Positions 1 to 55,700 of a stretch of DNA of 64,000 nucleotides are shown in pieces. The stretch spans positions 1-64,000 of the forward strand of contig NIVC01002623.1 in the NCBI GenBank assembly GCA_002269645.1. The letters are read 5' to 3'. Source of the stretch: Macrostomum lignano (Eukaryota). The notes under the pieces are model-generated. The model did not search any database. It worked only from the letters and a program-made list of their open reading frames with translations, and had not been told where the DNA came from. Positions within the stretch are counted from its first letter, which is position 1; each line of letters opens with the position of its first letter. The position numbers and the translations under genes are program-made.

Positions 1-803
1 AAGCCACGCAGGTGGGGGTACTGACTCATCTGGGTGTCGACATCCTCCTTTGTCAAAAACATGTTGATAGGTAAAGTGAAAGCCACGCACACTGTCTGAC
101 CGAATTTGCTACTTTGCTGAAGCAGTAGACGCGTGTTCTGGAGCAGTCCTCTACCGTACACATCGTCTCTGTGCACGATTCCTACCATGGTCCAGTTGAA
201 GTACTGCACAGAGGTGTACGACTGCCTTGGCCTGGTAGCTGTCGGAGCTACTTGACGGAACACGTTGGGGTAGAGCGTTTGTCCGAGCACAGATCGCTGT
301 GCACTCGTTTCCGACCTGCGCATGGAGTAGAGAGACAGCTGACGGGACACCAGCTGCGTCTCGCTGCTACGCCAGCCCGACACGACGGCATGAACGAAGT
401 AGAACTTTTCTCCGAGGCTGGACACTACCTGGTCGCAGAATCCGGCAGCCGCATCAAGGCCGGTCGGGTGTGTCCATGCGGCCTAATCCGCTTCAGCATG
501 TCCACCAGACGACGGTCCAGGTAGCACGGATCAAGATGGAGCAGACCGAGGCGGAGATTGCGACTGGTCCATTTCGCATTGATGAGTTTAGCAGCGTAGT
601 GCGGTGCCAGATTGCGCAGAAAAATTTGTTCGCTTATCATTGAATTGAGAGTGTCACAGTATTTATTCACACTTTGCAGAACGGCTAAGTTGATGAGGCC
701 GTTCGGGACGCATAGCACCTGTCCAGGGTGGTACTCACATTCTGGGCGCTGTAACTGTGTGTAAAAGATAAAGCGCAACAACTGTGGTTGCTGAGAGGGC
801 CAT
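1..803 (-). pseudogene. Class C GPCR (mGluR-like) copy 1, 5' part only (runs off window start); multiple indels
   Basis: 1-~622 is near-identical to 11772-~12393 (copy 2 Venus-flytrap region) but carries several 1-3 nt indels. ATG at 803 opens MALSATTVVALYLLHTVTA (signal-like), which must shift frame into EYHPGQVLC...FLRNLAPHY. Could be a pseudogene or low-quality consensus. Confidence 0.65.
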
Positions 804-9752: not shown

Positions 9753-12573
9753 CTAAGACCTTGATGCCATAACGGTAGTAGCAGGGTTATTGGTGTAGAA
9801 CTGGATGTTGTTCTCTGCCTCGGGCCTCGCGTACACTGCGTACAGCTTCGGAGCGAACAGGATCGACAGCAGCAGCGCGTGCGTGAGGCTGGACGAGAAC
9901 GCAAGCAGCAACATTGCGGTAGTCAGAGAGCTGGCCGAAAGAGCGGACGGAACGAACGCCGACCACAAGAAGAGGCCGGACACTCCGCAAGCCAGGATGC
10001 ACTTGGTGTCGTGAAAGTTGTCCGGAAGCGATCGGGTCTTCAGCGACAGGCCGCACGTGACAGTCAGGATCAGCAGGTTGCAGCACAGCGGAGTCCAGAA
10101 TGCCGTGGTCGCGATCACGCAGTTCTTCTCCACGACTGGTCGGACCGAAGGATCGGTCACAAGCTGCTTGAGCTCCGAGCTCAGTGGTCGGAACACGGTC
10201 ACTCCGCTAAGCAGCAGGCACTGCAATGCACCGCATGGATGGGTTCTAATCTCATTTGCTGGTGCGTGTCATATGCTCGTAGCTACACATTTGTCCTACA
10301 GCATGTCCTGCGTTTGTCCTACAGCATGTCCTGAATTTGTCCTACAGCATGTCCTGCATTAATCTTTAGAGCATGTCATGCATTTGTCCTACAGCATGTC
10401 CTGCATTTGTCCTACAGAATATCCTGCATTAATCTTTAAAGCATGTCCTGCATTTGTCCTACAGCATGTCCTGAATTTGTCCTACAGAATTTCCTCACCA
10501 TTCCGAAAATGACTGCGGCCAGCATCATCAGCATCGGCTTCTGTCGCGCGAGCCAAGGTACCGGACGACCCACTCTGGATGCAGAGAAGATCAGATGGAC
10601 GCGAAGGGTCTTCACCAACTGACTCGCGTAGCAAGCAGTCAGGCTGAGCTGGAATGCGCAGTTCAAAGCATTGCACATTACGTGCGAGCTGTCTACAGCG
10701 AACAGACCGAGACACGCTAGACCGAGGAGGTTCCCACACATGCACGTGACGGACAAGTGTATCGACGAGGCCTTGATGAGCTTGTGGTGTCGACGGTTGA
10801 TGAACAGAGCGAGCACGACGACCAGGAAGATCGAGAGTAGAGCGAGACATGCCAGCAGCACAGGAAACTGCAGTCCGTCTCTCCACGCGTACACCGGTAT
10901 CGACTCGCAGCTCAGCCGGTCTTGACTGGGCCAGTGAAACTCCGAACACGACAGACACGACTTGCCATCATCCGACACGATCTCCTGCTTGAAGCACGGC
11001 TTGCACGTAAAGCAGCAAGCATCTGTCTCCAACTTGATTTCGCCAGCACTGCACGGAGCACTGCAGAATGACTTTGGCAGTTCCGACTGAGCTGCATGCT
11101 GATCGGAGCTCGAGTTCTGCCACCATCGAATAGGTGTGAGGTCGCTCAACGTAAGACCGGCTGACTCCATCCACGTTCCGACCTTCACCAACTGACCGTC
11201 CGGCTGCTCCTGACGAATCTCGTAGGCCGGCGATCCGTCACCGCTCGAGTCGAAGCTCACGTTTCCGGTTCGCATGAAAGGGAAGCTGGAGTTCGCAAGC
11301 AGCTTCATCACCTTCGGACCTGTGACACATGCACTCACAGCCGTAACATTCGGCCACTTTGTCGCGCAATCGATCAGAGCGACACGCTCGATACACGAGA
11401 CCAGAATGTTGATTGAGTCCAGAAGTCTTGCGACAGGAGCCACCTCAGAGTCGATTGATAGACTCGACTTTGAGCCGACTCTACAACTGCCGTCAGAGCA
11501 GCACGATGCAGCGCTATCCAATGTGCAGTTGAACAGAAGTCGGAGCAGTTGTTCGCCGAACGGATAGCCGAGGACCTCAGATCCGTTCAGTGAGTGGTAG
11601 AACTGGATGAGGTCGGGCGTGGCGAACTTTGTAAACGAGGTATAGATGGCACCCGTGGTGAAATGTTTGTAGGCAACGGAATTCGCATCCGTTGTGATGA
11701 TAACTCCTTTTCTGCTACTTATCGCTTGGAGTAAGAATTCTGGAATGCTACTAAAGGTATCAAATACAAGAAAGCCACGCAGGTGGGGTACTGACTCATC
11801 TGGGTGTCAACATCCTCCTTTGTCAAAAACATGTTGATAGGTAAAGTGAAAGCCACGCACACTGTCTGACCGAATTTGCTACTTTGCTGAAGCAGTAGAC
11901 GCGTGTTCTGGAGCAGTCCTCTATCGTACACATCGTCTCTGTGCACGATTCCTACCATGGTCCAGTTGAAGTACTGCACGAGGTGTACGACTGCCTTGGC
12001 CTGGTAGCTGTCGGGAGCTACTTGACGGAACACGTTGGGGTAGAGCGTCTTGTCCGATAGAGCATCGCTGCTGCACTCGTTTCCGACCTGCGGCATGGAG
12101 TAGAGAGACAGCTGACGGGACACCAGCTGCGTCTCGCTGCTACGCCAGCCCGACACGACGGCATGAACGAAGTAGAACTTTTCTCCGAGGCTGGACACTA
12201 CCTGGTCGCAGAATCCGGCAGCCGCATCAGCGGTCGGGTGTGTCCATGCCGGCCTAATCCGCTTCAGCATGTCCACCAGACGACGGTCCAGGTAGCACGG
12301 ATCAAGATGGAGCAGACCGAGGCGGAGATTGCGACTGGTCCATTTCGCATTGATGAGTTTAGCAGCGTAGTGCGGTGCCAGATTGCGTAGAAAGATGGAT
12401 TCTGTGAGCTTCGCTCCAGGTGTGTCGCAGTAGAACTGTGTGCTCTCTAATACGGCTAAATTAATTATTCCGCTTGGGATGCACAGTTGCTGTCCGGGAA
12501 GGTACGTGACAGTTTGAGATGCAAGTCCAAGAACTAGAGTATAAGCAATTGCAGCTGCTGTCAGTGAAGTCAT
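9753..12573 (-). CDS. Class C GPCR (mGluR-like) copy 2; two exons, one 1-nt frameshift
   Basis: Exon 1 12573-10499, GT-AG intron 10498-10221, exon 2 10220-9753. Signal peptide, VFT (SSDALSDK, PDSYQAKA, FNWT), nine-Cys domain (CSAPC...CCFTC), 7TM with VKTLRV, KTRSLPDNFHDTK, FAPKLY. The G4 run at 11785-11788 is G5 in copy 1; restoring one G joins ORF 11719-12573 to 10436-11521. Confidence 0.85.
10280..10490. repeat. Intronic ~23-bp VNTR (GGACATGCTGTAGGACAAATGCA) in GPCR copy 2
   Basis: Same repeat occurs in the copy 3 intron (~20855-20990) with fewer units; intron lengths are 278 vs 219 nt. Confidence 0.85.
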
Positions 12574-13401
12574 ACTTACTGTCTCTGCTACGAAGGGCGG
12601 ATACTTAGCAGGATTTTTCTTATGACTTAAGTATCAAATCGGGAAGCCACGCCCATGCCCTCGGCAACCAATAAAGCGTGAGGCCTTAATCAGTGCAATC
12701 GATTGGCAACGTTTGGTTTCAATTTCTTCCGTCGTGCAAGCTCGATCTGCACAAGGAATTTCAGAGCAATTAAAATTTAAACTCATGGATTTTCGATAAA
12801 AGCCTTTAAGACTAGATTGATCGCAGCAGAGTATATTGATCGATGAGAATTATTGACTGTGCTCTCAAAACTCAATTTGTTTCTGCTTCATGCACGAGCT
12901 CGCATTATTGCAAGAAGTGAAATCGAGGAGCATCAAAAGAAGGAAATCGTTGGTAAATCTTTTAAAAACGTTTTTTGTTACATTTTTTAAAACCCACAGG
13001 GATCAGCTTTTCAGCTACCTTTGATAAACGAAAATAGTTGATAATTTTTCTCGTATTTTTTCTAGTCAGTCAATGTTTACGAAATCGATTCAGTGAGTTA
13101 AACCGACATATTCACAGGCCATTTGCTGTTGTCAACCCGAGGTTCTCGAAGTCAATGACATTTAAGAAATCATTGACTGTCGCTCAGCTCAGCTCAAGGT
13201 GACAAGGTGATAAGATAACACGATTGGCTCTGTCACTCTGACACGCAACTGATAACGACTGATTTCAACGTAAAATGCACCGCTATTGTTCTCACTTGGG
13301 AGTTCATGGTTGACAATATTTTGTTGAACCCTTTTTAATATGAGACGCTATGCCAGCCTTTAAGTACACGCTCTTCAGACAGTTCACGCATTCCACGATG
13401 C

Positions 13402-13696
13402 AATAATAATAATAATAAATAATTGGTTACACCTGCCCTAATGAGCAGATGTGCAACCGACAGCTCAGCCGCAGCTGAAGGCTGCTTACGGCTGTTCAGT
13501 CCAGGAACTGGGGGTCGCCACACACACCCTAAACTACCCCAGCGAGTTCTGGTGCCCATTTTACAGCTGGGTGAACTGAAGCAATGCAGAGTTCAGCGTC
13601 TTGCTCAAGGACACAAATTGTTCCGAGTGGGTCGAGAATCGAACCCCCGACCTTTCAGTCGTGAGTCCAACGCTCCAAAAACTAGACTAAAACCCC
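13402..13696 (-). mobile_element. tRNA-derived CORE-type SINE, near full length
   Basis: Minus strand: tRNA-like head with A box TAGTCTAGT..TGG and B box GGTTCGATTC, then TGTGTCCTTGAGCAAGACGCTGAACTC...CAGTT..CAGCTGTAAAATGGG matching the MIR/CORE consensus, and an (ATT)n tail at 13402-13420. Confidence 0.75.
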
Positions 13697-14196
13697 TCAC
13701 TAGGCTACAACCCCGGTGTAACTGTAGAAATTTTTTGTGAACATACGCTTGGGCTAAATTAACAAACAATTAAAATTAAGACTCCCAGTTCTCATCGACT
13801 ATTTTGAATGCGGTTTAGCTTTGAATTTTATAGAACAAAAAATTGTTATTAATTGTAATTTATACTTAATTTTTGCTTTTTCGACCACTAATTTCACTCT
13901 CTCTGACTAGAGGCTGTGGAGATATCAGGAGCTTCCTTCGCCAGGCAGTATAGCCCAGGGTTTTACCGAGAGCTGCATGATTTTATCACGACTCTACAAG
14001 CTGACTAAATCCATGTTGTAACAGCTGATTCAATTTTCGAGTTCACACGAGAAGAAAATGTAGCGGGCGTGGCTTGTACACGTATGCTGGAGTCGAATTT
14101 TAGGGAATTTTTTATACAGGATAATCTACTGTAAAATTGAGAGTTGCCCTCAAAGATGTCAAGAGGCAGATGGACATAAAAGAAGGGGGCTCCGAA

Positions 14197-14310
14197 CGGG
14201 TGACTACTGACAGACGGGTGACTACTGACAGACGGGTGACTACTGACAGACGGGTGACTACTGACAGACGGGTGACTACTGACAGACGGGTGACTACTGA
14301 CAGACGGGTG
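14197..14310. repeat. 18-bp tandem repeat x6 (CGGGTGACTACTGACAGA)
   Basis: Perfect units read directly. Confidence 0.95.
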
Positions 14311-14699
14311 ATGGACAGCGTCTGCAACCTTCTGACCGCCAAGCAGGAAATATCGAGTGACTTCCTTGAACCTCGAGAGCCAATTCAATCAATTTCAGCG
14401 TTGAAACAAGTTCAGTGAGTTTGTCACAAAATTGAGACATTGAGAGTATATTTTCATTCCAAGATGACTGAGCAGATGTCAGCAAGTACAAGATAAATTT
14501 TATTGCAATCGATTAGACTGATGGAGCCATCAAATCTTAAAGTCTATAAAGATATCTTTCTGGCAACGACAAACATTATCATTATTTCTTCGCGTGTTAA
14601 TGTCTTTTTGACCATGCGCCTAATTTACTTCAGTACCTCCTCAAGCTCTGAAGTTTGAGCCCTTTTCTTGGGGACGATAGATTTTGATAACTCCATTGC

Positions 14700-17120
14700 C
14701 CTACTTAATTACTTAACTCGTAGGTACTACTTAATTACTACTGACGAAGGGCACAGGCCCCAATCGCAACCCCAAGCTAACACAGAATTAAAGACGCTAA
14801 CCTCGGGCTGCGCCCACCCGGCGTCTGTAATCTTCATCCGGCCGGTGTCCCGGACGAATGCGCACAGGTCACGGATCCGGTCCAGGCTGTCCAGGGTGGC
14901 CAGCTCGTCCAGCCTTAGCGGGCATTCGAGATGGTGTCTCCGCGCTTCGTTGAAGTGCGGGCAGAAGGTGACGTGGTGCGCGGCAGTTCTGGGTTAAATG
15001 GGAGAGCAGCTTTTTTCTCTTTTGTTAAATATGTCTCTGGAAGAAGCCAAGGTCAGTGATGGCCATGGGCATCTTCCTGAGGTCAGTTTACTCAAGGAGA
15101 TTAGGTGTTTATGGCAGGCATCGCCGTTCGTGTTTGCCATTATTCCGAGCAGTGCAGCTGGTGTTGATGTCCTAAACATTTGTGAGTGGCGCAGTTGACG
15201 GATGATTTCGGGGCAGGCAGCTTGATCGACCGGTGCGCTCTACCCGGGATGCTGCCTCGTTTGGCGAGTTGATCCAACAGCTCACTGCCAAGGATGTTGC
15301 TGTGGCCTGGTTTCCTGAGCACGTTGATCTTTTTAAGGATCGCTAGCTTTAGCTTTGTACAGCTGCTTTTAACATTGATTTATGGTTATGACCGAGATGA
15401 AGGCTCTCTTGCAGGATCGCCTCACCCTTGTGGAAAACGGCGATGCCCGCACCGGCCATGCTATCGCACAGGATCCGTCAGTGAATCAGTGGGTGCCCTG
15501 ACTTCTTCCGGTTGACGCCCACATCCAGTGGGTGGCTACCTCGCGGCGGGATGGTGTACCTGAGTCTTTTCCTGGGATGAGCGAGGGGTTTACAGACCCA
15601 CCTACAGTACGTACAGGTTGAGGTGGATGTGTTGAAGATCGCAACGGATATAATCCAGGTAGGAAATAAGCGTCCTCTCAGGGATAAAGCCGGAGGGGGA
15701 GTTACGAGGGGTAGTAATGGCTTTATCACAGGTTAAGCGCGTGGCACCTCTTATCGTCTCAGCTCGGATAACCAGGTGCAGCGGAGGCATGTTGAGGATG
15801 GTTTTGAGCCCCTCGTAGGGGGTAGATGAGTTCGCATGAAGGCTCCGCAGATGCTACCTGTAGCTGATACAGCCGATCCCGCACCGTTTTCAGCTCCAAC
15901 GCGCTAGAACAAATGAAACATGCGTCAGTGATGCTGAGTCGGATGATGCCCGTGTAGATCCATCGGACCATCATGGAAGAGAGCCCCCAGGTAGGCCCGA
16001 TGGCTCTCTTCACTTGAGCAAAACATCGCTTAGCGCGCCCGATCATTGGCAACATACTTGGTCCAACGCAGATCATGCGAGAGTGTCGCCCTAGATATTT
16101 TATTTCCATGACTAGGGGGATGCCCCTGGCATAGATGGTAAATTTCCACATGCTCCACTTCCGCTTAGTGGTGAAGATAATGGCCACAGTCGTGGCGGTG
16201 CTAATATAGCTTCTTGCAAGCCATTTGATACTACGAGAAAGCAATTTAATAATCAGTTTCGTCCGGGTGACGGTGCCTTCCATCTGGGCGTCAGTCAGTG
16301 TCCCGCTGGCCGCGCGTACACAAATCTTATCGAGAGGCTCAGCCACCACCTTGGCGTAAGAGCTGGTTGTCTCTCTACCCATGGAGCGCTTCGGATCCAG
16401 AGGAGCAATGGTACGGTCTTCCGGCTGCTGGGCAGTGCTGGGTTTAAAAATGCTTTAAAAATCAGCTCGGCAGATTTTTCTGTTCTCGTTCGCGCCATCG
16501 CGCTGCCTAGGTCTCCACTGGTGGGAGTAGAAGTTTCCCTGCTTGGGGTAGCACCCGCGCGAGCTACGTGGAGAGAAAAGCCTCCGAGTTGGAGGTTTGG
16601 TGGATTTTCGAACCCCCCTCCCGTCCGCAGGAGCATTTAATTCAAAATCCACTTTGAAATGGGGAAGAGAATTGTTAGAAATTAATAAAAAAAAAGTTCG
16701 GCGCCCGGATATACCCCCAGTCAGCCAGAGGCTAACACCTGCGAACTCCGACGAACAGAAGGAAGGCTTTGGGTCACCGTCTTCAACCAGGGTTTCCTTC
16801 CTGGCCAAGCTCCGGAAGGCGCCCGGTCTACACTCTACAAGATGAGGGGCGGGTCGGGTGCAGGGTCGGGTTCACAATGCTAGGTCGGGTTGACTGTCAG
16901 CACTGTTTCCCCTCTTCCACAGGTCCGGCACTTGTGAACCCTTTCACTATTCACCTTGCAGCCTACCCCGAGAATAGGCAGCGGGGGGACCCCGTCGTCC
17001 ACCAGCAGAGAGCGAAAGGAAGGCGAGCTCGCCTTCGGAAAAGGCGAAAAGCTGGCAGATGTTACAGAGTCCCTCGGTTTGCAGGCGCCCTTAGCCCCCT
17101 TCATTACCCTAAGAGGTACT
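14700..17120 (-). mobile_element. Internally deleted LOA/R1-like non-LTR retrotransposon (ORF1 remnant + RT C-half + RNase H + CCHC tail)
   Basis: ORF 15759-16382 contains IKYLG and KRAIGPTWGL...WIYTGIIR (R1/LOA RT). FTDGS..GAGIAVF at ~15430-15485 (RNase H). [16 protein letters not shown]...FVRDTGR at ~14840-14990. The N-terminal RT and endonuclease are missing. Confidence 0.75.
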
Positions 17121-18735
17121 TTTGTACTTTGAAGTTGGATTCACAAAGGAAGATTTATCTAGTTCTTCTCTGTGTTAAAACTCGCCATAACTTTCGGCTT
17201 AAATACGCAGAAAACCGTTGCTCAAACGTATTTTGCTTTAGGAATAGCATGAAACATTGTACGGGCTAATATGGTAGCTCCTAGTTTTGATCCATCACAA
17301 AAAATCGCAATTTGATCCTCTTCGGAGTGTCATATATGTGAGATTATGGCTTAACAACTTCAGCTAATAACCCATCTTGTCGTGAATGTGGATGCATTGA
17401 CCTACTCGTAGTACTCGTAGATTTGAAATGCATCTTTAATCTCAAATACACATGGGAATTGCGACAGCTTAGCTCCTGGTTTAAATCCTGCAGCGCCCAT
17501 GACGATCAATTTCAAGCTTTTCCTGCTCGTCGAGGTCCACTGCGCTTGCATGCATGACATTTTATCACAGGCTTGAGTAGTTTAAGCTTAACTAACTCAA
17601 GTTTCTGGGCGCAACTGATAGATTTCTTGCTGCTTCACTTCATACGTGTATCAAGAAATTCAATCTGATAAATGGCTTGCAATAAGCCACCGTTAAAAGG
17701 TGGCGCTACTAGCGCTCACCACTGCACATTGCACAAGCATGGACTAAACTGAGGGAAGGACAATGTCAATATTTTAATAACTCATTCAGTGGTTATTCTC
17801 TCTCCCTTAGTCGCTATTCTCGCTAAATTTCTGTCAACTTTTAATGTCAATTGTGCAAAAATTTGTTCGCAATACACATAGGAGATCGATTCAATCACGG
17901 AAATGCTGCTCAGGAACACCACCTTGAGACAGTGATAGGCCGAAAGGGCTGATTGGATCTTCGGATGGTAAGATATTCTACGTTCATAAGTTATAAATCT
18001 CATATTGCAATATCAAGAATATTTCCTGCCATATCTGCTGCAGCAATTAACTTTTTTTACTAGATGTCTCTACCGAAGATTGCAGTGACGTGACACCACA
18101 TAGCAAAATCCAATATCCCTCAACTCTCAAACCCGTGATTGCTTAGTAAGGGTGGGGAAAATCTCTGATCGATAAGGCAAAATGTTACAAAGCATGGCTT
18201 TAGTTTTCGGATTCGTCCAGACCTAACAGCTGTGACTATTCAGCTGGAATCAGAAAGGAACGCTCGATAAATGAGAAATGCAAATTCATCTCTTTTATCT
18301 TTCATCAATTCACTCTACGCAGGGAGTAGACAGTCGAATTGCGCTGAAACTTTGCTCATTCTGCCTGGAATGCTGAGCCAGAACCGATGTTAGTCGCAAA
18401 TCTATTATTGCGAGCTGAAACTTGTGAACCAGCGCACGCTGTAGGAAACAGCGTTCTGACCATTACCGTAATGAAACTGCAGCGAAGCACGCGAATCAAT
18501 ATCCTGATAAAACCGTGCCCACGTTTCAGCTTTATCACAACCCGTTCCCCAATATTCTGGTCAAAAATCTGATTGGGTCAAAAAAGTTTCGACAGTATGA
18601 AGCCGGACAGACATCTCTTTAGGCCAAATATAAAAAACTGCACGACTTTACCGAGAAAAATGCTTTCTTGACGCCTCGTACAGGCTCGTGAAGCAGTTAA
18701 CCGTCTTGACAAAACGAGTCCAAAGTCCTACTAAC

Positions 18736-21534
18736 ATGGTATCTTGGGTAACCAGCCGCATCTTTGTATACACGTTTTTATTGAGCACTCTGGCAGCTCC
18801 ATCGTCTGAACAGCAACTGCAAAAGCAGCAGCTGAGCTGCCATTCAGGCAGCCTGTTCAGCTTGGCTGTGGTGCAGACCTCCCGATACCAGTGCAACTCG
18901 CCAGCGAATGTCCTGACGGAAGTCGAGTTTCTTCGGTCACTAACTCCGATCTATGCATTACGGTTGGCCAACAAGCGTCTTAAAGGCACTCTGCCGTCAA
19001 CGCTAGCAGCACATCCTGCCATTGGAATGGTGTTTTTGGATACCTGTCTTGACCAGCAGGCCACCGTGAGCCTCGCCAAGCACTTACGACCAGCTGGGCT
19101 ATCAGGAATTTCCTCCGCAAACCTCTGTAACCTGGTTATACCGCTCCTGGGTGCAAATTTCTACCCGGTGCATGCCGTGGCCGCTGGCTGGTACAGCAGC
19201 ACCACTCAGCTGGTGTCCACCTTGATTTCTGCGCACAGAATCCCGCAGCTTGCCACAGAGGCCAGCAGCGATGCCCTGTCGGATAAGGTCCAGTTCCCCA
19301 ATGTCTACCGGCTGGTTCCACCAGACAGCTACCAGGCAAAAGCTGCTGTCGATCTCATTCTACGACTCAATTGGACATACATTGGCATACTGTACCGAGA
19401 TGATGTGTATGGGCGAGGCTTGTTGCAGAGCACACGTCTGCTTCTGCAGTCGGCTCGGCTCTCTGGAAGTAACAAAAGCGTCTGCATCGCCTTTATGTCA
19501 GCCATCAACACTTTCACGCCCGTGTCTGAAGTTTTACAGACGATTCGGGAACGAAAACACCTGAAAGCTTTTTTGATTTATGAACTCTTCGAACATCTAC
19601 CTGAACCAATTCTTACTGAAGTTTTTAACGAGGGAGGAATTATTGTAACCTCAGACACAAATACAGTGCCCTACAAAAAGTTCACACAAGGTGCTCTCTA
19701 CATCTCCTTCCCATCATTTTCCACGCCCGACCTCATCCAGTTCTACCACTCGCTGAACGGATCTGAGGTCCTCGGCTATCCGTTCGGCGAACAACTGCTC
19801 CGACTTCTGTTCAACTGCACATTGGATAGCGCTGCATCGTGCTGCTCTGACGGCAGTTGCAGAGTCGGCTCAAAGTCGAGTCTATCAATCGACTCTGAGG
19901 TGGCTCCTGTCGCAAGACTTCTGGACTCAATCAACATTCTGGTCTCGTGTATCGAGCGGGTCGCTCTGGTCGATTGCGCGACAAAGTGGCCGAATGTTAC
20001 GGCTGTGAGTGCATGTGTCACAGGTCCGAAGGTGATGAAGCTGCTTGCGAACTCCAGCTTCCTTTTCATGCGAACCGGAAACGTGAGCTTCGACTCGAAC
20101 GGTGACGGGTCGCCGGCCTACGAGATTCGTCAGGAGCAGCCGGACGGTCAGCTGGTGAAGGTCGGAACGTGGATGGAGTCAGCCGGTCTTACGTTGAGCG
20201 ACCTCACACCTATTCGATGGTGGCAGAACTCGAGCTCCGATCAGCATGCAGCTCAGTCGGAACTGCCAAAGTCATTCTGCAGTGCTCCGTGCAGTGCTGG
20301 CGAAATCAAGTTGGAGACAGATGCTTGCTGCTTTACGTGCAAGCCGTGCTTCAAGCAGGAGATCGTGTCCGATGATGGCAAGTCGTGTCTGTCGTGTTCG
20401 GAGTTTCACTGGCCCAGTCAAGACCGGCTGAGCTGCGAGTCGATACCGGTGTACGCGTGGAGAGACGGACTGCAGTTTCCTGTGCTGCTGGCGTGTCTCG
20501 CTCTACTCTCGATCTTCCTGGTCGTCGTACTCGCTCTGTTCATCAACCGTCGACACCACAAGCTCATCAAGGCCTCGTCGATACACTTGTCCGTCACGTG
20601 CATGTGTGGGAACCTTCTCGGTCTAGCGTGTCTCGGTCTGTTCGTTGTAGACAGCTCGCACGTAATGTGCAATGCTTTGAACTGCGCATTCCAGCTCAGC
20701 CTGACTGCTTGCTACGCGAGTCAGTTGGTGAAGACCCTTCGCGTCCATCTGATCTTCTCTGCATCCAGAGTGGGTCGTCCGGTACCTTGGCTCGCGCGAC
20801 AGAAGCCGATGCTGATGATGCTGGCCGCAGTCATTTTCGGAATGGTGAGGAAATTCTGTAGGACAAATGCATGACATGCTGTAGGACAAATGCAGGACAT
20901 GCTGTAGGACAAATGCATTACATGCTTTAAAGACTAATGCAGAACAAATGTAGGACATGCTGTAGGACAAATGCAGGACATGCTGTAGGAAAAATGTGTA
21001 GCTACGAGCATATGACACGCACCAGCAAATGAGATTAGAACCCATCCATGCGGTGCATTGCAGTGCCTGCTGCTTAGCGGAGTGACCGTGTTCCGACCAC
21101 TAAGCTCGGAGCTCAAACAGATTGTGACCGATCCTTCGGTCCGACCAGTCGTGGAGAAGAACTGCGCGATCGCGACCACGGCGTTCTGGGCTCCGCTGTG
21201 CTGCAACCTGCTGATCCTGACTGTCACGTGCGGCCTGTCGCTGAAGACCCGATCGCTTCCGGACAACTTTCACGACACCAAGTGCATCCTGGCTTGCGGA
21301 GTGTCCGGCCTCTTCTTGTGGTCGGCGTTCGTTCCGTCCGCTCTTTCGGCCAGCTCTCTGACTACCGCAATGTTGCTGCTTGCGTTCTCGTCCAGCCTCA
21401 CGCACGCGCTGCTGCTGTCGATCCTGTTCGCTCCGAAGCTGTACGCAGTGTACGCGAGGCCCGAGGCAGAGAACAACATCCAGTTCTACACCAATAACCC
21501 TGCAACCATATCTACTACTCCAACTATGCAGTAG
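18736..21534 (+). CDS. Class C GPCR (mGluR-like) copy 3, intact, ~859 aa, two exons
   Basis: ATG 18736; exon 1 to 20844; intron GTGAGG...TTGCAG 20845-21063 (phase 0, FGM|CLL); exon 2 21064-21534. Signal peptide, VFT, nine-Cys domain and seven hydrophobic helices with class C motifs KTLRV, KTRSLPDNF, PKLY. Confidence 0.92.
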
Positions 21535-21799: not shown

Positions 21800-24080
21800 C
21801 ATTAGCTCTTTGAGTCCTACATGTAAAATATGCTCACTTTTGCTCTAAGAGTTCATGTAACATCTGCTCTATGAGTCCCATGTAGCGCATGCTCGACAAT
21901 GAGTCCTATGTACACGTAACACTTTGTGACGACGTCGTTAACATCTTAAATTTTTAGTTTCTATGTGAGTTTTTATTACTTAAAATTATTGTAGTTGATT
22001 AATTTGCAGGTTCCCCAGCTATTAATTTAATGTAATTTATTTAGAAAAAAATGTACTTTAAGTTTTATTTATTTAAGTCCAAGTTATTACTACTTTTTTG
22101 ATAGATATCTTAGGTTTAAATGAATCGGATTTCCCCGCCAATTTAAATGTTGCCTCGCGCTCGTTAATTGTACTTTCCTCTACTTGGCGTGTTGTCTCGT
22201 GCCCTGCGTGTCAACACTACTACTAATTGAACTAGCTAACGAATAAATAATTAAATAAATAATTAATTAAATAACCGCTTACTAAATCTCGAACTCGCTA
22301 CGTCTACGCCACAACTTGCTCTACTATGGGTCCCTTGACTTAGCAACAGGGCTGTCCCAGAGGGGGACACTATGAGCCCCATGTATCACCTGCTCTATGA
22401 ATCTTATGTAACCCTTTCTCTATGAGTCCCATGTAACAGATGCTCTATGAGTCTCATGTAGCCCTTTCTCTAAGAGTCCTATGTAACACTTGCTCTACTA
22501 TGATTCCCACGTAACACTTGCTCTACTATGAGTCTCATGTAATACTTGCTCTACTATGAGTCTCATGTAATATCATGTACATAATATCATAACATATTAC
22601 AATAACATAATATCATAACATATTGTAACATATTACAATAATAACAATATAAGTACACATAATATCACTTGCTCTACTATGAGTCCCACGTAACACTTGC
22701 TCTACTATGAGTCCCACGTAACACTTGCTCTACTATGAGTCCCACGTATCACTTGCTCTACTATGAGTCCCACGTAACACTTGCTCTACTATGAGTCCCA
22801 CGTATCACTTGCTCTACTATGAGTCCCATGTATCACCTGCTCTATGAATCTTATGTAACCCTTTCTCTATGAGTCCCATGTAACAGATGCTCTATGAGTC
22901 TCATGTAGCACTTTCTCTATGAGTCCTATGTACCTGGTAACACTTGCTCTACTATGAGTCCCACGTAACACTTGCTCTACCATGAGTCTCATGTAATACT
23001 TGCTCTACTATGAGTCCCATATATCACCTGCTCTATGAGTCCTATGTAACACTTGCTCTACTATGATTCCCACGTAACACTTGCTCTACTATGAGTCTCA
23101 TGTAATACTTGCTCTACTATGAGTCTCATGTAATATCATGTACATAATATCATAACATATTACAATAACATAATATCATAACATATTGTAACATATTACA
23201 ATAATAACAATATAAGTACACATAATATCACTTGCTCTACTATGAGTCCCACGTAACACTTGCTCTACTATGAGTCCCACGTAACACTTGCTCTACTATG
23301 AGTCCCACGTATCACTTGCTCTACTATGAGTCCCACGTAACACTTGCTCTACTATGAGTCCCACGTATCACTTGCTCTACTATGAGTCCCATGTATCACC
23401 TGCTCTATGAATCTTATGTAACCCTTTCTCTATGAGTCCCATGTAACAGATGCTCTATGAGTCTCATGTAGCACTTTCTCTATGAGTCCTATGTACCTGG
23501 TAACACTTGCTCTACTATGAGTCCCACGTAACACTTGCTCTACCATGAGTCTCATGTAATACTTGCTCTACTATGAGTCCCATATATCACCTGCTCTATG
23601 AGTCCTATGTAACACTTGCTCTACTATGATTCCCACGTAACACTTGCTCTACTATGAGTCTCATGTAATACTTGCTCTACTATGAGTCTCATGTAATATC
23701 ATGTACATAATATCATAACATATTACAATAACATAATATCATAACATATTGTAACATATTACAATAATAACAATATAAGTACACATAATATCACTTGCTC
23801 TACTATGAGTCCCACGTAACACTTGCTCTACTATGAGTCCCACGTAACACTTGCTCTACTATGAGTCCCACGTAACACTTGCTCTACTATGAGTCCCACG
23901 TAACACTTGCTCTACTATGAGTCCCACGTAACACTTGCTCTACCATGAGTCTCATGTAATACTTGCTCTACTATGAGTCCCATATATCACCTGCTCTATG
24001 AGTCCTATGTAACACTTGCTCTACTATGAATCCCATGTAACACTTGCTCCATGAGTCCTATGTAACTATTGCTTTATGAA
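21800..24080. repeat. 28-bp satellite (CACTTGCTCTACTATGAGTCCCACGTAA) with 563-bp higher-order repeat
   Basis: An AT-rich spacer AATATCATGTACATAATATC... recurs at 22569, 23132 and 23695. Confidence 0.9.
21925..22313 (+). mobile_element. Solo LTR (389 bp), Gypsy-like, inserted in the satellite
   Basis: TGTGACG...CGCCACA ends, 4-bp TSD ACTT (21921-21924, 22314-22317), AATAAA cluster ~22243-22270. Removing it restores the satellite unit GTAACACTTGCTCT. Confidence 0.75.
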
Positions 24081-24412
24081 TTATATCTAACACTAGTGTC
24101 AAGAGCTATATTTTTTTGTACCTTGTATTTATGGACTAATTTGTATTTTTAGCATACTACCACGATCTAGTATCTGTAAACATAAAATGTACCGCTTATT
24201 GGAAACATAACCTCCACCAAGAACCAAAAAGTGTTGCAAAATACGTGGACAGCCCAGTCTGTTCATTCTAATCCGCTTCAGTTTTCTATAGAAGAGAGTC
24301 TAATATCAGATAATGATGGGGCTAACAAGTACAACAATGACTACTGTGACAAGTGAGAAGTCAAATCCAATTCAAGTGAGAAGTGAGAAGTAGAGATGAA
24401 GATTCGTAACCG

Positions 24413-26085
24413 TCAAAAGCTGCCCACAATGACCCGTGCATCAGAGTCGCAGTTCTCCTCCGCTGGACTGTATGCGGGGTTTTCCACGCCTCCATTGCTG
24501 GATGTTGTCTGGTCGGTTGGATGGATTGAGGATGGCGGCAGTGGCGCCGGTTGAGGCGGCGATCGCGGCGGCAGCGGCGGTGGCTCCGGCTGTTCGCCGC
24601 TCGCTGGCGAAGGTTGCTCCCTCCTGCGAAAGAAACGTCGAGCCCGAGTCGGTAGTGGCATCGGCGGGGCTCGGTCAGCTCTTCGTAGGCGACCGTGCTG
24701 ACTCCGCCGCTTGGACTGGCAGGGTTGGGCCTCTCGTACTCGGCATAAACCTCGGTCTTTGTCGTGTCACTCGACACTGCTACAGAGAGGGCAGACAAGT
24801 TTGCAGCCATTCGGCGATAGTAAAGAAATACAGCAACGATGGCAATGGCAGCCATGACTGTCAGGCTTGTGACGACAGACGTAGCTATGATGAGTCCAGT
24901 ATGCGGCGGTTGAGATGGAGGCTGCTGTAGCTGCCGCGCCACTGTTGGTGTCGGTGTCGCCAGCTGACGCAGTGTCGGGCAGACATCCACCTTCGCTAGC
25001 AGCTTTTCCTCCAGGCTGGCACAAGCAGCCCCGGAAATGCCAGACGGTAGAACGAACGTCGGCGGTGAGCAGATGCAGACAAACGGGTTCGCCACAAGGC
25101 TGAGCTCCTGTAGATCCGGCAGAAGTTCGCTCCCCAGACTGGGTGGCGCTTTTCGCACACAGTTACCGTCTAAGCTGAGGCGTTGCAGCATCCGTAGCGG
25201 CCACACAGCCGGCCAAACGATGGAGTCCGTGAGTCCTCTCGCACCTCCGTCATCTTCGCTGCAGTTGAGCACATGAGGATCGGAGCCAAGCTGCAGCTCT
25301 TTTAAGTTTGGTAATCGGCGCAGAATCAGTTCCCAGCCTCCGCGTGACTCAGAGTCACCATCAACCACCAGCGTCTTGGCTAGAGTCGGGGCAGTAATCT
25401 CTAGCCGTCTAAGACTACCTCCTAGTTGATCAAATGCGGCAGCCTCAATTCTGTAGAGCTGCGTTCGAGTTAGCCGCAGTGATTCCAGGGCCTTTAAATT
25501 GTAGAAATCGCTCGCTCTGATTACAGATAGGCCACCGCCAGAGACGTCAAGCTCCTGAAGCATTTCCAAACCAGCAAGCTGGTTCGGTAACGAGTCCAGC
25601 TGTCTTAGTCCAGCCATCCGGAGACGGCGCAGACGTCTCAAACCTTCCAGACCGTCGCAGGTGGAGTCGGACAGCCCCGTGCCACTGAGGTCGAGCTCCA
25701 GAAGAGTTTCTGCCGCGCCAGTCAGACTGTCTGCGGCCAGGCTCGCCAGACGGGCGTTAGCTGACAAGTCTAGCTGGCGTAGTCCGCTGGCATTGACGAA
25801 TGCGCCGCGATTCAAGATGCGGATTTGATTGCCGGCCAACAGCAGAATATGCGGCCGGAGCTCCCGGTCTAGCAATGGCGGCAACGACAGATCACAGTTG
25901 GTGCAGTCAACCTGTCGGGCGCCGGAAGACTCCTTCAGGCGGCAGCATTGGCGACTGTCTCTAAGGTTTTCGAGTGTCAAGTAGACTGTCACATCAGAGG
26001 GTTGCTGCTGCAGTTGCACAGTTGTAGCGCAGGTAACGCAAATGATGAGGATAAGAGCACTGCGATGAAAGTTCGACGACGGCAT
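24413..26085 (-). CDS. Single-exon leucine-rich-repeat type I membrane receptor (no TIR); probable 1-nt frameshift in tail
   Basis: ATG 26085 (MPSSNFHRSALILIICV, signal; the 26151 start in the track is GTG). LRR-NT (CC...VDC), multiple LxxLxLxxN repeats, LRR-CT NPFVCIC, TM LIIATSVVTSLTVMAAIAIVAVFLYY. The tail most plausibly shifts at 24666-24669 into ORF 24413-24661. Confidence 0.85.
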
Positions 26086-27084
26086 AGTGAGGGCTGGGCA
26101 CTTTTTTGGACCCTCTATGTCTCTATTTTTTGCGGCTTGTTGGTCTGCCACTTTCTTTTTTTATTGGGTATCGAATTGCCTTTGCAGTTCGGGTTACCAG
26201 CAAAGTGTCACTAGGAGAGAGAAAATCCTTTCTAAATAGCGATGTCCAGCCAAAACAATGCAAATTAATGCTAAACATCCAATGCAAATCGACCCACCCT
26301 GAGCCTTGTTTTTACTTTTTGGTTGTGCTCACTGCTTACCCCGAATGCTAATTGATGAAGCCGTTTTCCGTGTTGCTTCCCCTTTCTTCTTCCATCTGCT
26401 GCCCTGCTGCAGGAACTCTTCTACAAAGTGTACGTTTACTGGTTGTTCTTTGTTGACACTCATGGCCTCGCAGACTTTACATTCCTAGAAAATACTGTAG
26501 TTGAGCCTGGAAAACCGTAAGAAGACAGGAAACACAAGAGGAGACAGAGAACACAGGGAGACGACAGGGAGGGAAGTAGACGAGGCCCCAAAATTATGCA
26601 TGGTCCTTCTTGTATTAAGTTTTCTGACGATGTGAAATTTCGGTCTTGTAAAGTCAGGTGTCTTTCGGTCTTATGAAAGCGACCCATCATATACTCTGTG
26701 TCAGTGCTTGGCAAGAAAAGCAAGCAGGGCTAATTTCTGACTAATTTCTTAAATTAAGTGTTGTATTCTCGCTTCCAGTCCAGTGATGCTATTTCTAGAA
26801 GTCCCTGCTAGAGACGTCTCAAAGTTTTTTCAGCCAGTGGCCGGTTGCATGAGAGAGCATGCAGCCAATCAAACCCTGCCAGCACTTCGATTTTTTCAAG
26901 CGTCGTGACTCAACAATTTTTATAAAACAATGCGTCCCTCTTTTTTAAACTTACTTCCTTAAGTTTTTATTAACTACTAAATATTTCGTATTCCATAAAT
27001 ATCCTTTTACGTTTCCCTTTGGAACAAAGTTCCGGAGAAAACGACTAAAAACTGTTTCAATTACAACGCTAAAAAAGCAAGAAT

Positions 27085-27903: not shown

Positions 27904-28634
27904 CTGGACACCCTTCCTCTGGACACAATCTCCTTGGACACCCTTCCTCTGGACACAATCTCCTTGGACACCCTTCCTCTGGACACAATCTCCTTGGACA
28001 CCCTTCCTCTGGACACAATCTCCTTGGACACCCTTCCTCTGGACACAATCTCCTTGGACACCCTTCCTCTGGACACAATCTCCTTGGACACCCTTCCTCT
28101 GGACACAATCTCCTTGGACACCCTTCCTCTGGACACAATCTCCTTGGACACCCTTCCTCTGGACACAATCTCCTTGGACACCCTTCCTCTGGACACAATC
28201 TCCTTGGACACCCTTCCTCTGGACACAATCTCCTTGGACACCCTTCCTCTGGACACAATCTCCTTGGACACCCTTCCTCTGGACACAATCTCCTTGGACA
28301 CCCTTCCTCTGGACACAATCTCCTTGGACACCCTTCCTCTAGACACAATCTCCTTGGACACCCTTCCTCTGGACACAATCTCCTTGGACACCCTTCCTCT
28401 GGACACAATCTCCTTGGACACCCTTCCTCTGGACACAATCTCCTTGGACACCCTTCCTCTGGACACAATCTCCTTGGACACCCTTCCTCTGGACACAATC
28501 TCCTTGGACACCCTTCCTCTGGACACAATCTCCTTGGACACCCTTCCTCTGGACACAATCTCCTTGGACACCCTTCCTCTGGACACAATCTCCTTGGACA
28601 CCCTTCCTCTGGACACAATCTCCTTGGACACCCA
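27904..28634. repeat. 30-bp near-perfect tandem repeat x~24 (TCCTTGGACACCCTTCCTCTGGACACAATC)
   Basis: Identical 60-nt lines with a single variant near 28341; source of six spurious ORFs. Confidence 0.97.
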
Positions 28635-30915: not shown

Positions 30916-31677
30916 TTAGAACACGGACAGGCACTCGCAAATGTACTTCCGGTTGAAAGAGCATCCGGCATCATCGACGCCAATCTTGTGACTAGAGTGG
31001 ACAGCAGCGCAGCCCTCACCAGGCAATCCGTTATTCGGCCTCCCGGGCTCCCAGACGTCGGCCCGGATGCTCTCGTTGCAGGCGTCCCAGATCCAGCCTT
31101 CCGTCTTGCCCGCAGAGCCCAGAATCTGGTGGCCACCCAGGTACAAACTCTCCACAGGAATGTTCGACACGTTCTTGATCCACATCAGGTGACGGGACTC
31201 GTCCGAGTCCAGAGCGTCCGCGAACTTCGACAGTCCGGCCTCCTGTCCGCACCGGGAGAGAGCGTCAGCCCAATTGGTCACCAGTGAGGCCGACACCTTG
31301 TATGAGGATCCGAACTGAGAGTAGTCGTATCCGGGTGGGCACAGGCGACCCGGAGCTACTCCAGGTAGCGATCTCACGTACACGGTTACTCGGTGAGTGC
31401 AGTTGGCCACTGACTGCACTCGGTGGCTGCACTTGTCGAACAGGAACAGCTTGCAGAGGCAGTCGCCATCCGGCAGCGAGAAGGCCCGGCAGTTCGGCAT
31501 CTTGGCGCAGTGCAGGCTGCAGGACTGCGGATCGCACGAGCCCCACACGGTGTGGGTGAAGCTGGACGTCACGCAGTCAGCGCCAGAGATCGGGTGGAAA
31601 GTCGCTTTCAGAGAGCCGCAAGTTGGTTCACTTTTTACCACGACACTCAGCGTCAGCAGTAGCAGCAATAGCAGCAT
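30916..31677 (-). CDS. Secreted PAN/Apple + C-type lectin domain protein, 253 aa, intronless
   Basis: Signal MLLLLLLLTLSVVVKS; CSLHCAKMPNCRAFS...C (PAN); CPPGY...NWADALSRC...WEPGRPNN...EGCA...DDAGC...YICE (CTLD). Confidence 0.85.
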   Translation of the reverse strand: MLLLLLLLTLSVVVKSEPTCGSLKATFHPISGADCVTSSFTHTVWGSCDPQSCSLHCAKMPNCRAFSLPDGDCLCKLFLFDKCSHRVQSVANCTHRVTVYVRSLPGVAPGRLCPPGYDYSQFGSSYKVSASLVTNWADALSRCGQEAGLSKFADALDSDESRHLMWIKNVSNIPVESLYLGGHQILGSAGKTEGWIWDACNESIRADVWEPGRPNNGLPGEGCAAVHSSHKIGVDDAGCSFNRKYICECLSVF

Positions 31678-34689: not shown

Positions 34690-35330
34690 CGAAAGCTGCT
34701 GTGTCAACAAGGATGGCCTATCGCCAATCGGACTTCTTCGAGAGAACTCTTCGGGTGTTCCAGGGAGATACGCCGGTTGCTGCTTGTTCTGGTGCTCGAC
34801 TGAATTCCGGACAGGCTGATTGCTGTTGCTGCGAGCGTCGGCCTGGTGGTAAACACGCACAAGACCGTCGCACTGCGTGTCGGACAACATAGAGGCTGTA
34901 CTATTGTGGTGAGGCGCTGACTGACAGGCGATGGAACTTCTGTGATGTCAACAGTTTGTCTACCTCGGTAGTCTGGTTCCCAACGTCTGCGAAGATCCGA
35001 GGCGTCCCATAGGCTGGCTTGCCTGGGCTGTTCTGCTAAGGTTGTCCTGCAGTCTGAAGCCCACCTAACCGCGGCGTTGTTCCGGAAGGTGGTCGAGACT
35101 GTCCTGCTGTACAATGTTGAGACTTTAACGCTGACAGACTCGCTGGAACAGAAAGTTGATGCCACGCACGCACGCCACCTTCAAGATCGGCGACGAGCCA
35201 GCACTCTGACGCTGCGATACCTGCCGTCTGAGCGACCTTCTGCGCCGAAAACACGTACTAACCACAGCCAGTGCAGCTGATGCGTCGACTGCCTGCCTGC
35301 TGGCTAACACCGGCGTCTGCTGCATTTGCA
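34690..35330 (+). mobile_element. Decayed RTE-clade LINE reverse transcriptase fragment
   Basis: Frameshifted motifs VFQGDT (~34755-34771), AASVGLVVNTHKT, FVYLGS (~34958), FRKVVETVLLYNVETLTLT (35080-35136). Confidence 0.65.
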
Positions 35331-35805: not shown

Positions 35806-36937
35806 TCAGGCCTGCAGCATCGGAGCATCATAGCTGGGCCGAGTGACCACGACATGGCTGGTCTGGTTCATCACCTGGAATGAGGAGAGTGGAGCAGCCC
35901 GTTGTCTGACTGGTTCAGCATGTGATTGAGCTGGGTCTGGCAGTGACTGAGCTGGGTCTGTTTAGACAGTGACTGAGTAGGATCTGGTCTGACAGTGACT
36001 GAGTAGGGTCTGGTCTGACAGTGACTGAGTAGGATCTGGTCTGACAGTGACTGAGTAGGGTCTGGTCTGACAGTGACTGAGTAGGATCTGGTCTGACAGT
36101 GACTGAGTAGGGTCTGGTCTGACAGTGACTGAGTAGGGTCTGGTCTGACTGACTGAGTAGGATCTGGTCTGGCAGTTATTGAGTAGGGTCTGGTCTGGCA
36201 GTGACTGAGTATAGGGTCTGGTCTGACAGTGACTGAGTAGGGTCTGGTCTGGCAGTTATTGAGTAGGGCCTGGTCTGGCAGTGACTGAGTATAGGGTCTG
36301 GTCTGGCAGTGACTGAGTAGGGTCTGGTCTGGCAGTGACTGAGTATAGGGTCTGGTCTGGCAGTGACTGAGTATAGGGTCTGGTCTGACAGTGACTGAGT
36401 AGGGTCTGGTCTGACAGTGACTGAGTAGGGTCTGGCAATGACTGAATAGGGTCTGGCAATGACTGAATAGGGTCTGGCAATGACTGAATAGGGTCTGGCA
36501 ATGATTGAGTAGGGTCTGGTCTGGCAATGACCTGAGTAATTGGGTCTGGAAGTGACTGAGTAGGGGTTGGCAGTGACTAAGCGGAGGGGTGAAGCACCCC
36601 AGAGGCGCACCGGTCGGTAGACGGTGCGGTTCTTCCTGCAAGGCGCGCAGCAGCAGCAGCAGCAGCAGGAGAGCAGGAACAGGGCCAGGAGACCTCCGGC
36701 GGCGATGCACACGTAGAACAGCGCCTTCCAGACCCGACGGCAGCCGGTGTCGATGCCCTGCGTTGACACGCCGGCTTTGCACATCTCGTAATAAAACGGG
36801 TTGCCATCGTCTTTCTTAACCTCGATGCTGGCGCCGCTCTTGCCCATATTGAAGTTGATGCCGCTGCCATCGCTGGCGACACCGCTGGCCAGCAGGGCCA
36901 GGACAGCCAGGGCGCAGATATTGAGGCGGCAGAGCAT
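35806..36937 (-). CDS. Small type I membrane protein B (131 aa), paralogue of 27085-27709
   Basis: Exon 1 36937-36611 (109 codons), intron GTGCGC...CTCCTCATTCCAG 36610-35875, exon 2 35874-35806 VMNQTSHVVVTRPSYDAPMLQA*. Shares DxGNPFYYxxC...TGCxRxWKxLFYVC...GG...LFL..C7 with protein A. Confidence 0.8.
35930..36570. repeat. Intronic ~26-bp minisatellite (GAGTAGGGTCTGGTCTGACAGTGACT)
   Basis: Fills the intron of protein B. Confidence 0.9.
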
Positions 36938-41119: not shown

Positions 41120-41775
41120 CAACCACCTCACCTCTCTATCCCAGTATCATCACTCCCAACATCCTCAATCCCAACATCCTCAATCCCAACATCCTCACTC
41201 CCAACATCCTCAATCCCAACATCCTCACTCCCAACATCCTCACTCCCAACATCCTCACTCCCAACATCCTCACTCCCAACATCCTCACTCCCAACATCCT
41301 CACTCCCAACATCCTCACTCCCAACATCCTCACTCCCAACATCCTCACTCCTAATATCCTCACTCCCAACATCCTCACTCCCAAACATTCTCAATCCCAG
41401 CATCCTCTCACTCCCAACATACTCAATCCAAGCATCCTCACTCCCAACATCCTCACTCACAGCATCCTCTCTCCCAGCATCCTCAATCCCAGTGTAATAT
41501 TTTATTCCTTGCCTTAGAGGCAGTCTGAACTGTTAGCAATCGTGACAAATAATTAGCTGAATCATCGTATTGATTTAATGTACGTTCGCTCTCTATGTAC
41601 ATCGCAGGCTTAACTTCAACTTGCATAAATAAAGCGATCACGGCCTCACGGGGCCTTCGTGTTTTTGGGTGCTGCCAAATACCGCGTGTTACACCAGTAT
41701 CCTCACTCCCAACATACTCAATCCAAGCATCCTCACTCCCAACATCCTCAATCCAAGCATCCTCACTCCAATCCT
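41120..41775. repeat. 15-bp tandem repeat (CCCAACATCCTCACT) in two blocks (~41120-41490, ~41695-41775)
   Basis: Read directly; lies just downstream of the GT32 stop. Confidence 0.9.
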
Positions 41776-51800: not shown

Positions 51801-52063
51801 GAGATTTACTCTGAGATCCGCCCTCCACCCAGAGATTCACCGCTGAGATTCACCCTCCCCACCCCAGAGATTCACTATGAGATCCGCCCTCCCCACCCAG
51901 GCTGCGCAAGCGCTGCCGGCACTGCTACTTCGAACGCAACCCGGCGGGCTTCCTGACCATCCAGTGCCCGATGCACCCGAGGCACAAGCAGCAGGAGAAG
52001 CCGCGGCCGCCCAGTCCCAAGTGGGCCTTCAAGCGGCACATTTACAAAAGCGTCAACTGGTGA
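48894..52063 (+). CDS. MRPL36: Mitochondrial ribosomal protein L36 (bL36m), 121 aa, two exons
   Basis: Exon 1 48894-49096 (transit-peptide-like, ends RGLKYYD-AA|gtgagt); exon 2 51901-52063 (cccag|G LRKRCRHCYFERNPAGFLTIQCPMHPRHKQQ...). Phase 2 matches; CxxC...C.xH zinc ribbon and HPRHKQ are diagnostic of bL36. Confidence 0.9.
49150..51900. repeat. ~34-bp satellite x~80 filling the MRPL36 intron (CTGAGATCCGCCCTCCCCACCCCAGAGATTCACT)
   Basis: Read directly; variants of 31-35 bp. Confidence 0.95.
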
Positions 52064-55219: not shown

Positions 55220-55271
55220 GGTAGATAGATAGATAAATAGATAGATAGATAGATAGGTAGATGGATAGATG

Positions 55272-55304
<33 letters not shown>

Positions 55305-55305
55305 G

Positions 55306-55343
<38 letters not shown>

Positions 55344-55430
55344 TATAGATAGATAGATAGATAGATAGATAGATGGATAGATAGATAGATAGATAGATAG
55401 ACAGATATATAGATAGATAGATAGATAGAC

Positions 55431-55463
<33 letters not shown>

Positions 55464-55464
55464 T

Positions 55465-55561
<97 letters not shown>

Positions 55562-55584
55562 CAGATATATAGATAGATAGATAT

Positions 55585-55677
<93 letters not shown>

Positions 55678-55700
55678 CAGATATATAGATAGATAGATAT

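Follow-up and report, generated by a model that had tools for sequence, protein, structure and literature searches.

How can two neighboring genes be near-identical over most of their length, silent sites and intron included, and be saturated with silent differences in an adjoining part of the same exon? This question is raised by a pair of class C G protein-coupled receptor (GPCR) genes in a 64,000-nucleotide stretch of Macrostomum lignano DNA (GenBank assembly GCA_002269645.1, contig NIVC01002623.1, positions 1 to 64,000 of the forward strand), hereafter called the window. The two genes, gene A (copy 2) and gene B (copy 3), are transcribed divergently and both lie within 9753-21534; the 5' part of a third paralogue, copy 1, is arranged in tandem with copy 2 and cut by the window edge, which brings the receptor copies visible in 64 kb to three. 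A sequence-only reading of the locus had proposed a variable/constant design, in which recombination homogenizes the signaling half of the receptors while the sensing half diversifies. We find that occasional recent interlocus gene conversion, producing mosaic genes without a domain-targeted design, is the probable explanation.

Gene B, on the plus strand, has two exons. The first (18736..20844) is an ATG-started open frame that encodes the signal peptide, the Venus flytrap (VFT), the cysteine-rich domain (CRD) and transmembrane helices (TM) 1 to about 4, and ends at a GT donor at 20845. The intron (20845..21063) is 219 nt long, GT..AG and phase 0, and carries a 23-nt variable number tandem repeat (VNTR), as read from the sequence and from Tandem Repeats Finder (TRF; rows 20848-20996). 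The second exon (21064..21534), also an open frame, encodes the remaining TM helices, a short tail and the stop. In the spliced product of 859 aa, Pfam places ANF_receptor at residues 95-466 (E=1.9e-27), NCD3G (PF07562) at 511-560 (E=3.7e-10; 40.0 bits against a cutoff of 38.9) and 7tm_3 (PF00003) at 583-828 (E=2.3e-33), the last restored across the junction by the predicted splicing. The closest solved structures are mGluR5, mGluR2 and mGluR3 (E ~1e-54, residues ~140-847), followed by CaSR and T1R2, and residues 143-847 align to the mGluR5 cryo-electron microscopy chains. Gene A mirrors this structure on the minus strand: exon 1 (10499..12573), whose frame is broken once as assembled into two frames that are both colinear with gene B; a GT..AG intron of 278 nt (10221..10498) with the same 23-nt VNTR, again from the sequence and TRF; and exon 2, an open frame that includes the stop codon (9753..10220). 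Its head also matches ANF_receptor (E=1.9e-18). Thus, all three Pfam domains are present, and genes A and B are mGluR-like class C GPCRs; the initial identification of a head-to-head class C pair is borne out by the Pfam architecture together with the mGluR similarity. Copy 1 (1..781, minus strand) has frameshifts in both its signal-peptide region and its VFT.

The rear parts of the two genes form the arms of an inverted repeat, located at 9781..11622 in gene A (codons ~318-838) and 19721..21503 in gene B (codons 330-850), intron included, by a repeat finder, BLAST and global alignment. The repeat finder reports two arm pairs, 10437-11708/19635-20906 (1272 nt, 96%) and 9778-10346/20938-21506 (569 nt, 98%), and their sole separator is the intronic VNTR. 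In the global alignment, identity per 100-nt window is 97-100% from A 11618/B 19725 to A 9819/B 21465 and falls to 29-65% outside, a sliding-window contrast that the sequence-only reading had suggested examining and that we obtain here for the A/B pair. The edges could be resolved to the base: the first identical run begins at A 11622/B 19721, directly ahead of the TPDLIQFYH codons, and the last such run stops at A 9781/B 21503, following NNPA, past which the last 9-10 codons and the 3' flanks of A and B are unrelated. No intron stands at the 5' boundary, with block and diverged head lying within the same exon, and homology runs on across this edge, colinear and in frame, at 44-60% amino acid identity. 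Thus, the inverted near-identical repeats, their abrupt ends and their differing last residues are all as they had been described from the letters alone.

Within the block, the coding parts of A and B differ by 19 substitutions in 1564 nt (~98.8% nucleotide identity), 16 of them transitions, with no indels. The 13 synonymous and 8 non-synonymous differences depart from neutrality (binomial p = 3e-4), with a synonymous divergence (dS) of 0.034 and a non-synonymous divergence (dN) of 0.007. These differences, being transition-biased, synonymous-biased and free of indels, look like real mutations. Eight of 522 codons differ in the amino acid if the boundary codon is counted, and seven differ inside the block (~521 codons), which is the number first estimated. 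The longest perfect run, 313 nt, stands at the end of the block, and such a difference-free stretch has p ~0.02 under a uniform rate. The intron had been described as shared save for VNTR copy number, and this also holds: its non-repetitive 67-nt 3' part is identical in A and B, and the VNTR has ~9 copies in A and fewer in B (TRF splits the B array), with a different arrangement as well.

Ahead of the block, the heads agree at 139 of 315 aligned residues (44%) and at 52% of nucleotides, and the contrast in identity between block and N-terminus is extreme (Fisher p ~1e-200). The proportion of differing synonymous sites (pS) is 0.77, which is saturated, and that of non-synonymous sites (pN) is 0.39, a pN/pS of ~0.5; these values and the block dS and dN above are the per-part rates that had been called for. 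The early estimate of roughly 40% identity over the first ~330 aa is therefore close to the measured value, but its equation of these residues with the whole flytrap does not stand, since ANF_receptor extends over residues 95-466. The block starts at gene B residue 330, inside the VFT and not at the border between VFT and CRD, and more than one third of the sensing domain falls in the shared "constant" part. By the mGluR alignment and the lobe boundaries that we take to be those of mGluR1, residue 330 would lie ~20 residues past the third lobe crossover, and the shared part would presumably comprise the second lobe-1 segment, the last lobe-2 strand, the CRD and the seven-transmembrane region (7TM).

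Both heads keep a Ser (YSS/RSS), a Ser in place of Thr188, an Asp (PPDSYQ/APDSYQ), a Tyr (DDVYG/DDVYD) and an Asp (TSD/TTD). We take these positions to be the alpha-amino-acid contacts Ser165, Thr188, Asp208, Tyr236 and Asp318 of mGluR1, in numbering and roles that we assume. The receptors probably sense amino-acid-like ligands through the flytrap, and heads that differ at 56% of residues may be different enough for different specificities.

The head of gene A contains a second tract of near-identity, with another partner. Codons ~60-267 (11772..12396, minus strand) are 97% identical to copy 1 at window positions 1-625, in direct orientation, and the 5' edge of this tract is sharp as well, at codon ~60 in the FLRNLAP motif, upstream of which the copies are only loosely similar. 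Gene A is therefore assembled from segments with different histories: codons 1-59 are unique, codons ~60-267 or more have copy 1 as closest relative (97% nucleotide identity), codons 318-838 have gene B (98.8%), and the last nine codons are again unique; the comparison with copy 1 ends at codon 267, ~50 codons short of the block, where copy 1 leaves the window. Thus, gene A is a patchwork of at least two donor types. Of the proposed division into a homogenized signaling half and a diversifying sensing half, the conversion is well supported, and the division itself is not, since the edge lies inside the VFT and the head of copy 2 has itself been homogenized.

Over the 625 nt shared with gene A, copy 1 has 11 substitutions and about as many indel events, namely 8, and its frame is broken in the signal-peptide region too; it is either a pseudogene or a poorly polished consensus stretch. 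Gene A loses its frame at a run of four C (11785..11788, minus strand). Its N-terminal frame (12573..11719) ends in TAA (11719-11721), its C-terminal frame is open from ~11800 downwards at an offset of one base, and both frames align to B. A fifth C in the run would read QYPHLRGFL, comparable to HLKAFL in B and QYPHLRG in copy 1, and copy 1 has five C at this site, in frame. The break may have arisen recently, as a mutation that inactivates the gene, or may be an error of the consensus in the homopolymer. A short intron rescuing the frame was also considered and rejected, since no GT..AG candidate is longer than 17 nt (range 7-17 nt), whereas the real intron measures 219-278 nt, and a single extra C restores colinearity with both B and copy 1. 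The ratio of 13 synonymous to 8 non-synonymous differences in the block indicates a tail under purifying selection, which argues against gene A as a long-dead pseudogene. With one frameshift in copy 2 and many in copy 1, part of the receptor cluster may consist of pseudogenes.

Does the head evolve faster than the tail? Among 1.84 billion representatives, searched exhaustively and without profiles, one close relative came up, P0001, which is 48% identical and present in UniParc only. It is a fused gene model of 2024 aa with the GPCR at residues 1210-2023. All other matches of this search are at or below ~33% identity, and the few lower ones that were looked up come from an annelid (Owenia) and a nemertean (Tubulanus) and are mGluR-like. 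When A, B and P0001 are aligned together, identities of A and B to P0001 are 38-54% in tail segments and 32-53% in the head, or 23-53% if the low value of the signal-peptide stretch is counted in, and in the head the three proteins are roughly equidistant. Front and rear are thus equally diverged from P0001, which means that the head is not evolving faster and that the A-B identity of the tail is the anomaly. Together with a head pN of 0.39 below the pS of 0.77, this speaks against a sensing domain that is faster evolving or positively selected relative to the 7TM, and the expectation that the sensing half diversifies is not upheld. Where A and B differ and P0001 matches one of them, two of the changes lie in B and one lies in A, and changes therefore appear to have arisen in both copies.

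Other searches for relatives added little. A homologous-protein search with full gene B gave no match, through a word index that also failed to return P0001; the same search with the B ectodomain gave a single match, P0151, at 25% identity, and with the P0001 ectodomain none. Exact look-ups of the proteins from five ORFs of the window gave no match, and a metagenome scan with gene B peptides found no relative. Several database proteins (P0002-P0004, P0009 and P0025) are predictions of 2200-3900 aa, each with 6-13 separate flytrap-region matches, and probably arose by the fusion of class C receptor genes that stand in tandem in other genomes. Within the window, a short reverse-transcriptase relic at 34705-35038 (plus strand) matches the part of P0001 that resembles a long interspersed nuclear element (LINE) and is fused upstream of its GPCR (tblastn E=2e-5).

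These patterns have the properties of interlocus gene conversion: identity changes abruptly at silent and non-coding sites as well as coding ones, and segments of one gene have different closest relatives. Since the near-identity of the block includes synonymous sites and the intron, it points to recombination or gene conversion and not to purifying selection, and since the join is in frame and seamless at homologous codons, with intron and silent sites carried along, it must be a homologous replacement, for which interlocus gene conversion between inverted neighbors is the usual explanation. The second, independent sharp-edged tract with a different partner, copy 1, lends further support to conversion. 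We infer that the replacement took the form of conversion rather than some other form, and any direction given to it is part of the same interpretation. On this model, a small mGluR-like cluster with anciently diverged heads would have had stretches recently overwritten by non-reciprocal homologous recombination between paralogues. One tract of ~1.84 kb, spanning the second lobe-1 flytrap segment, the CRD, the 7TM and the intron nearly to the stop codon, would account for the likeness of copies 2 and 3 over their last two thirds, and another, of at least 625 nt, would have given copy 2 its copy-1-like codons ~60-267. The three tract ends that can be seen all stand at motifs conserved even in P0001, namely FLRxL, PDLxxFYHSLN and the end of FAPKLYA..FYT, which fits tracts resolving in the islands of local homology that diverged paralogues may still offer. 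The tracts may also have begun from such short conserved islands, despite flanks of ~52% identity. Since the event, the tail would have been under purifying selection.

Several points weigh against this explanation. Outside the tracts the paralogues are ~52% identical at the nucleotide level, a poor substrate for homologous recombination, and a one-off conversion of 1.8 kb is hard to account for mechanistically unless divergence of the block was prevented throughout. Moreover, the window shows two and a half family members, which do not fix donor, recipient or number of events. In addition, the frameshift of copy 2 and the many indels of copy 1 cast some doubt on the local consensus quality.

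The first of these points leads to the most serious alternative, which we nevertheless consider unlikely: a long-term, selectively maintained concerted evolution of a "constant" signaling tail since the duplication, by conversion and/or inversion between the arms, from which the ligand-contacting head escaped and diverged. This model removes the homology problem, since a block always kept more than 97% identical would always be a good recombination substrate, and its flanks of 52% identity would stop heteroduplex extension and thereby give stable sharp edges. The five presumed ligand-contact positions lie in the diverged part, by the mGluR alignment and the residue roles assumed above, as the model would have it. 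However, the edge falls within the flytrap fold instead of between modules, heads are not exempt from conversion, given that copy 2 was homogenized with copy 1 in its head, heads are no faster than tails relative to P0001, and a head pN/pS of ~0.5 with saturated pS carries no signal of diversifying selection.

Base composition and the distribution of differences could speak for repeated conversion of the block. GC content at third codon positions (GC3) is 0.68-0.77 in the block versus 0.56-0.61 in the heads, with equal GC content at first and second positions (chi-square p = 7e-6), as expected of long GC-biased conversion, and the 313 difference-free nucleotides at the end of the block hint at more than one event. 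However, each head has a GC3 peak of its own in the conserved VFT core, and the pattern may follow constraint or codon bias. GC3 is therefore ambiguous as a sign of long-term biased conversion, and the hints for repeated conversion are weak. A slightly less likely version extends the constant tail to the family: a physically duplicated tail would be kept identical across many members with a fixed PDLIQFYH boundary, perhaps with spacer inversion, while the heads diversify.

Spacer inversion had been put forward as a way of swapping N-termini and promoters between the tails. The arms enclose a unique 8.1-kb segment (11623..19720) that contains both diverged heads and ~6.1 kb of intergenic DNA, and the assembly gives one orientation of this spacer. 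A crossover between the arms would invert the ~8.1-kb segment and is topologically possible, so that this part of the proposal holds. However, the effect of such an inversion would be close to nil, since what it exchanges is limited to seven residues, the last 9-10 codons and the 3' untranslated regions. Thus, the inversion is not a meaningful switch. The segment also carries an 18-nt minisatellite at 14196-14311; no conserved open reading frame (ORF) was found in the intergenic DNA between the arms, and an ORF at 15759-16382 appears LINE-like by eye and has no Pfam match.

Far less likely is an assembly artifact, in which the block was collapsed, duplicated or chimeric, for example by an alternative haplotype of the copy 3 tail mis-joined to a copy-1-type head. 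A divergence of 1.2% with a VNTR length difference would also fit two alleles, and the indel-rich copy 1 and the homopolymer frameshift of copy 2 are typical of an imperfect repeat consensus. However, both arms are flanked by unique sequence on each side, and at the joins homologous codons meet in frame, with weak homology continuing beyond; a chimeric join would be expected inside the shared repeat and not at its edge. The differences between the arms, biased toward transitions and synonymous changes and without indels, are unlike sequencing error, and the other long ORFs of the window are intact.

The last rival, conceivable for a head-to-head pair in a chemoreceptor-like family, starts from an inverted duplication of the whole gene, after which only the heads would have diverged, very fast and under positive selection. 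It has a negligible chance of being right and is excluded by the saturated silent sites of the heads, since protein-level selection cannot produce a pS of 0.77 in the heads beside a dS of 0.034 in the tails of the same exon, pN is below pS in the heads, and the copy 2 head has a 97% twin elsewhere, in copy 1. Insertion of a transposon-borne or otherwise non-homologous tail was considered separately and is excluded by the homology that continues in frame across the edge.

The window as a whole appears eukaryotic, with spliceosomal GT..AG introns, genes with signal peptides and TM helices, and many minisatellites. Just downstream of the receptor pair, at 24361-26151 (minus strand), lies a gene for a transmembrane protein with leucine-rich repeats (Pfam LRR_8, E=8e-15). 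A secreted 253-aa ORF at 30916-31677 (minus strand) weakly matches C-type lectins (E=0.008, short of the Pfam cutoff). Glycosyltransferase exons with a DXD motif (Gly_transf_sug) lie at ~41825-42600 (minus strand), where an intron appears to split RADVAR / YIYMYKFGGIYTDLD. An ORF at 44151-45209 (plus strand) encodes a signal peptide, five 25-aa repeats (NAPVRNWGPRATQRPYYRP...) derived from a 75-nt tandem repeat, and a C-terminal TM helix, and has no Pfam match. Long minisatellite arrays are unusually numerous; with units of 8-34 nt and up to 81 copies, several of them more than 90% homogeneous and with strong local GC skew, they together take a large share of the window (22369-24079, 27905-28633, 35934-36565, 41146-41491, 49151-51898, 52355-54095, 55222-55889, 56984-57758, 59737-61287 and 62652-63154). 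No tRNA or Rfam match was found in the window.

The locus provides a very clear natural case of partial conversion between otherwise saturated paralogues, with edges resolved to the base and a tract from a second partner in the same gene. For this receptor family, whole-protein trees will mislead and domains need separate analysis, and copy 2 may be miscalled as intact or as a pseudogene, a call that hinges on a single homopolymer C. If the same tail boundary recurred family-wide, it would point to a modular constraint in which the second lobe-1 segment, the CRD and the 7TM are co-adapted, plausibly for dimerization and G-protein coupling. If tails were indeed held constant, the family would be a recombination-based counterpart of splice-based variable/constant clusters, with a uniform chassis for dimerization and signaling.

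How does this locus compare with known systems? For mouse V1R clusters, interlocus gene conversion has been inferred (PMC2644715), and for V2Rs it has been discussed (PMC3590772). The receptor pair resembles conversion in clustered chemosensory GPCRs (olfactory receptors, V1R and V2R) and in opsin L/M arrays in its neighboring paralogues, in tracts with abrupt ends that measure hundreds to thousands of bases, and in its mosaic genes and pseudogene partners. Unlike in those clusters, the partners are saturated at silent sites outside the tract and stand inverted, head to head, and the tract takes up two thirds of an almost intron-less class C gene, intron included. In domain content, A and B resemble V2R/OlfC, T1R and mGluRs, with VFT, nine-cysteine domain and 7tm_3 and with the presumed Ser/Thr/Asp/Tyr/Asp amino-acid-binding positions apparently retained. 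They differ from vertebrate class C receptors in their ~25-30% identity, a single intron instead of a multi-exon structure and a very short C-terminal tail, and they have no orthology to any named class C subtype, the closest database protein being P0001.

Inverted arms kept near-identical by intrachromosomal conversion are found in the human Y-chromosome palindromes and in the repeats of the filamin/emerin region, which flank invertible segments. The locus shares with them two inverted arms around a unique spacer that a crossover would invert; here, however, the arms are 1.8 kb long and ~98.7% identical, and consist of gene parts and not whole genes. In the clustered protocadherins and UGT1A, variable heads share one physical constant region through splicing. 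The idea of many variable heads on one constant signaling tail is common to both, whereas here every gene carries a tail of its own, fused to it in the same exon, and recombination would be what keeps the tails alike, if they are kept so at all. Thus, we conclude that the locus is a clear new instance of known interlocus conversion in an mGluR-like family and not a new kind of system.

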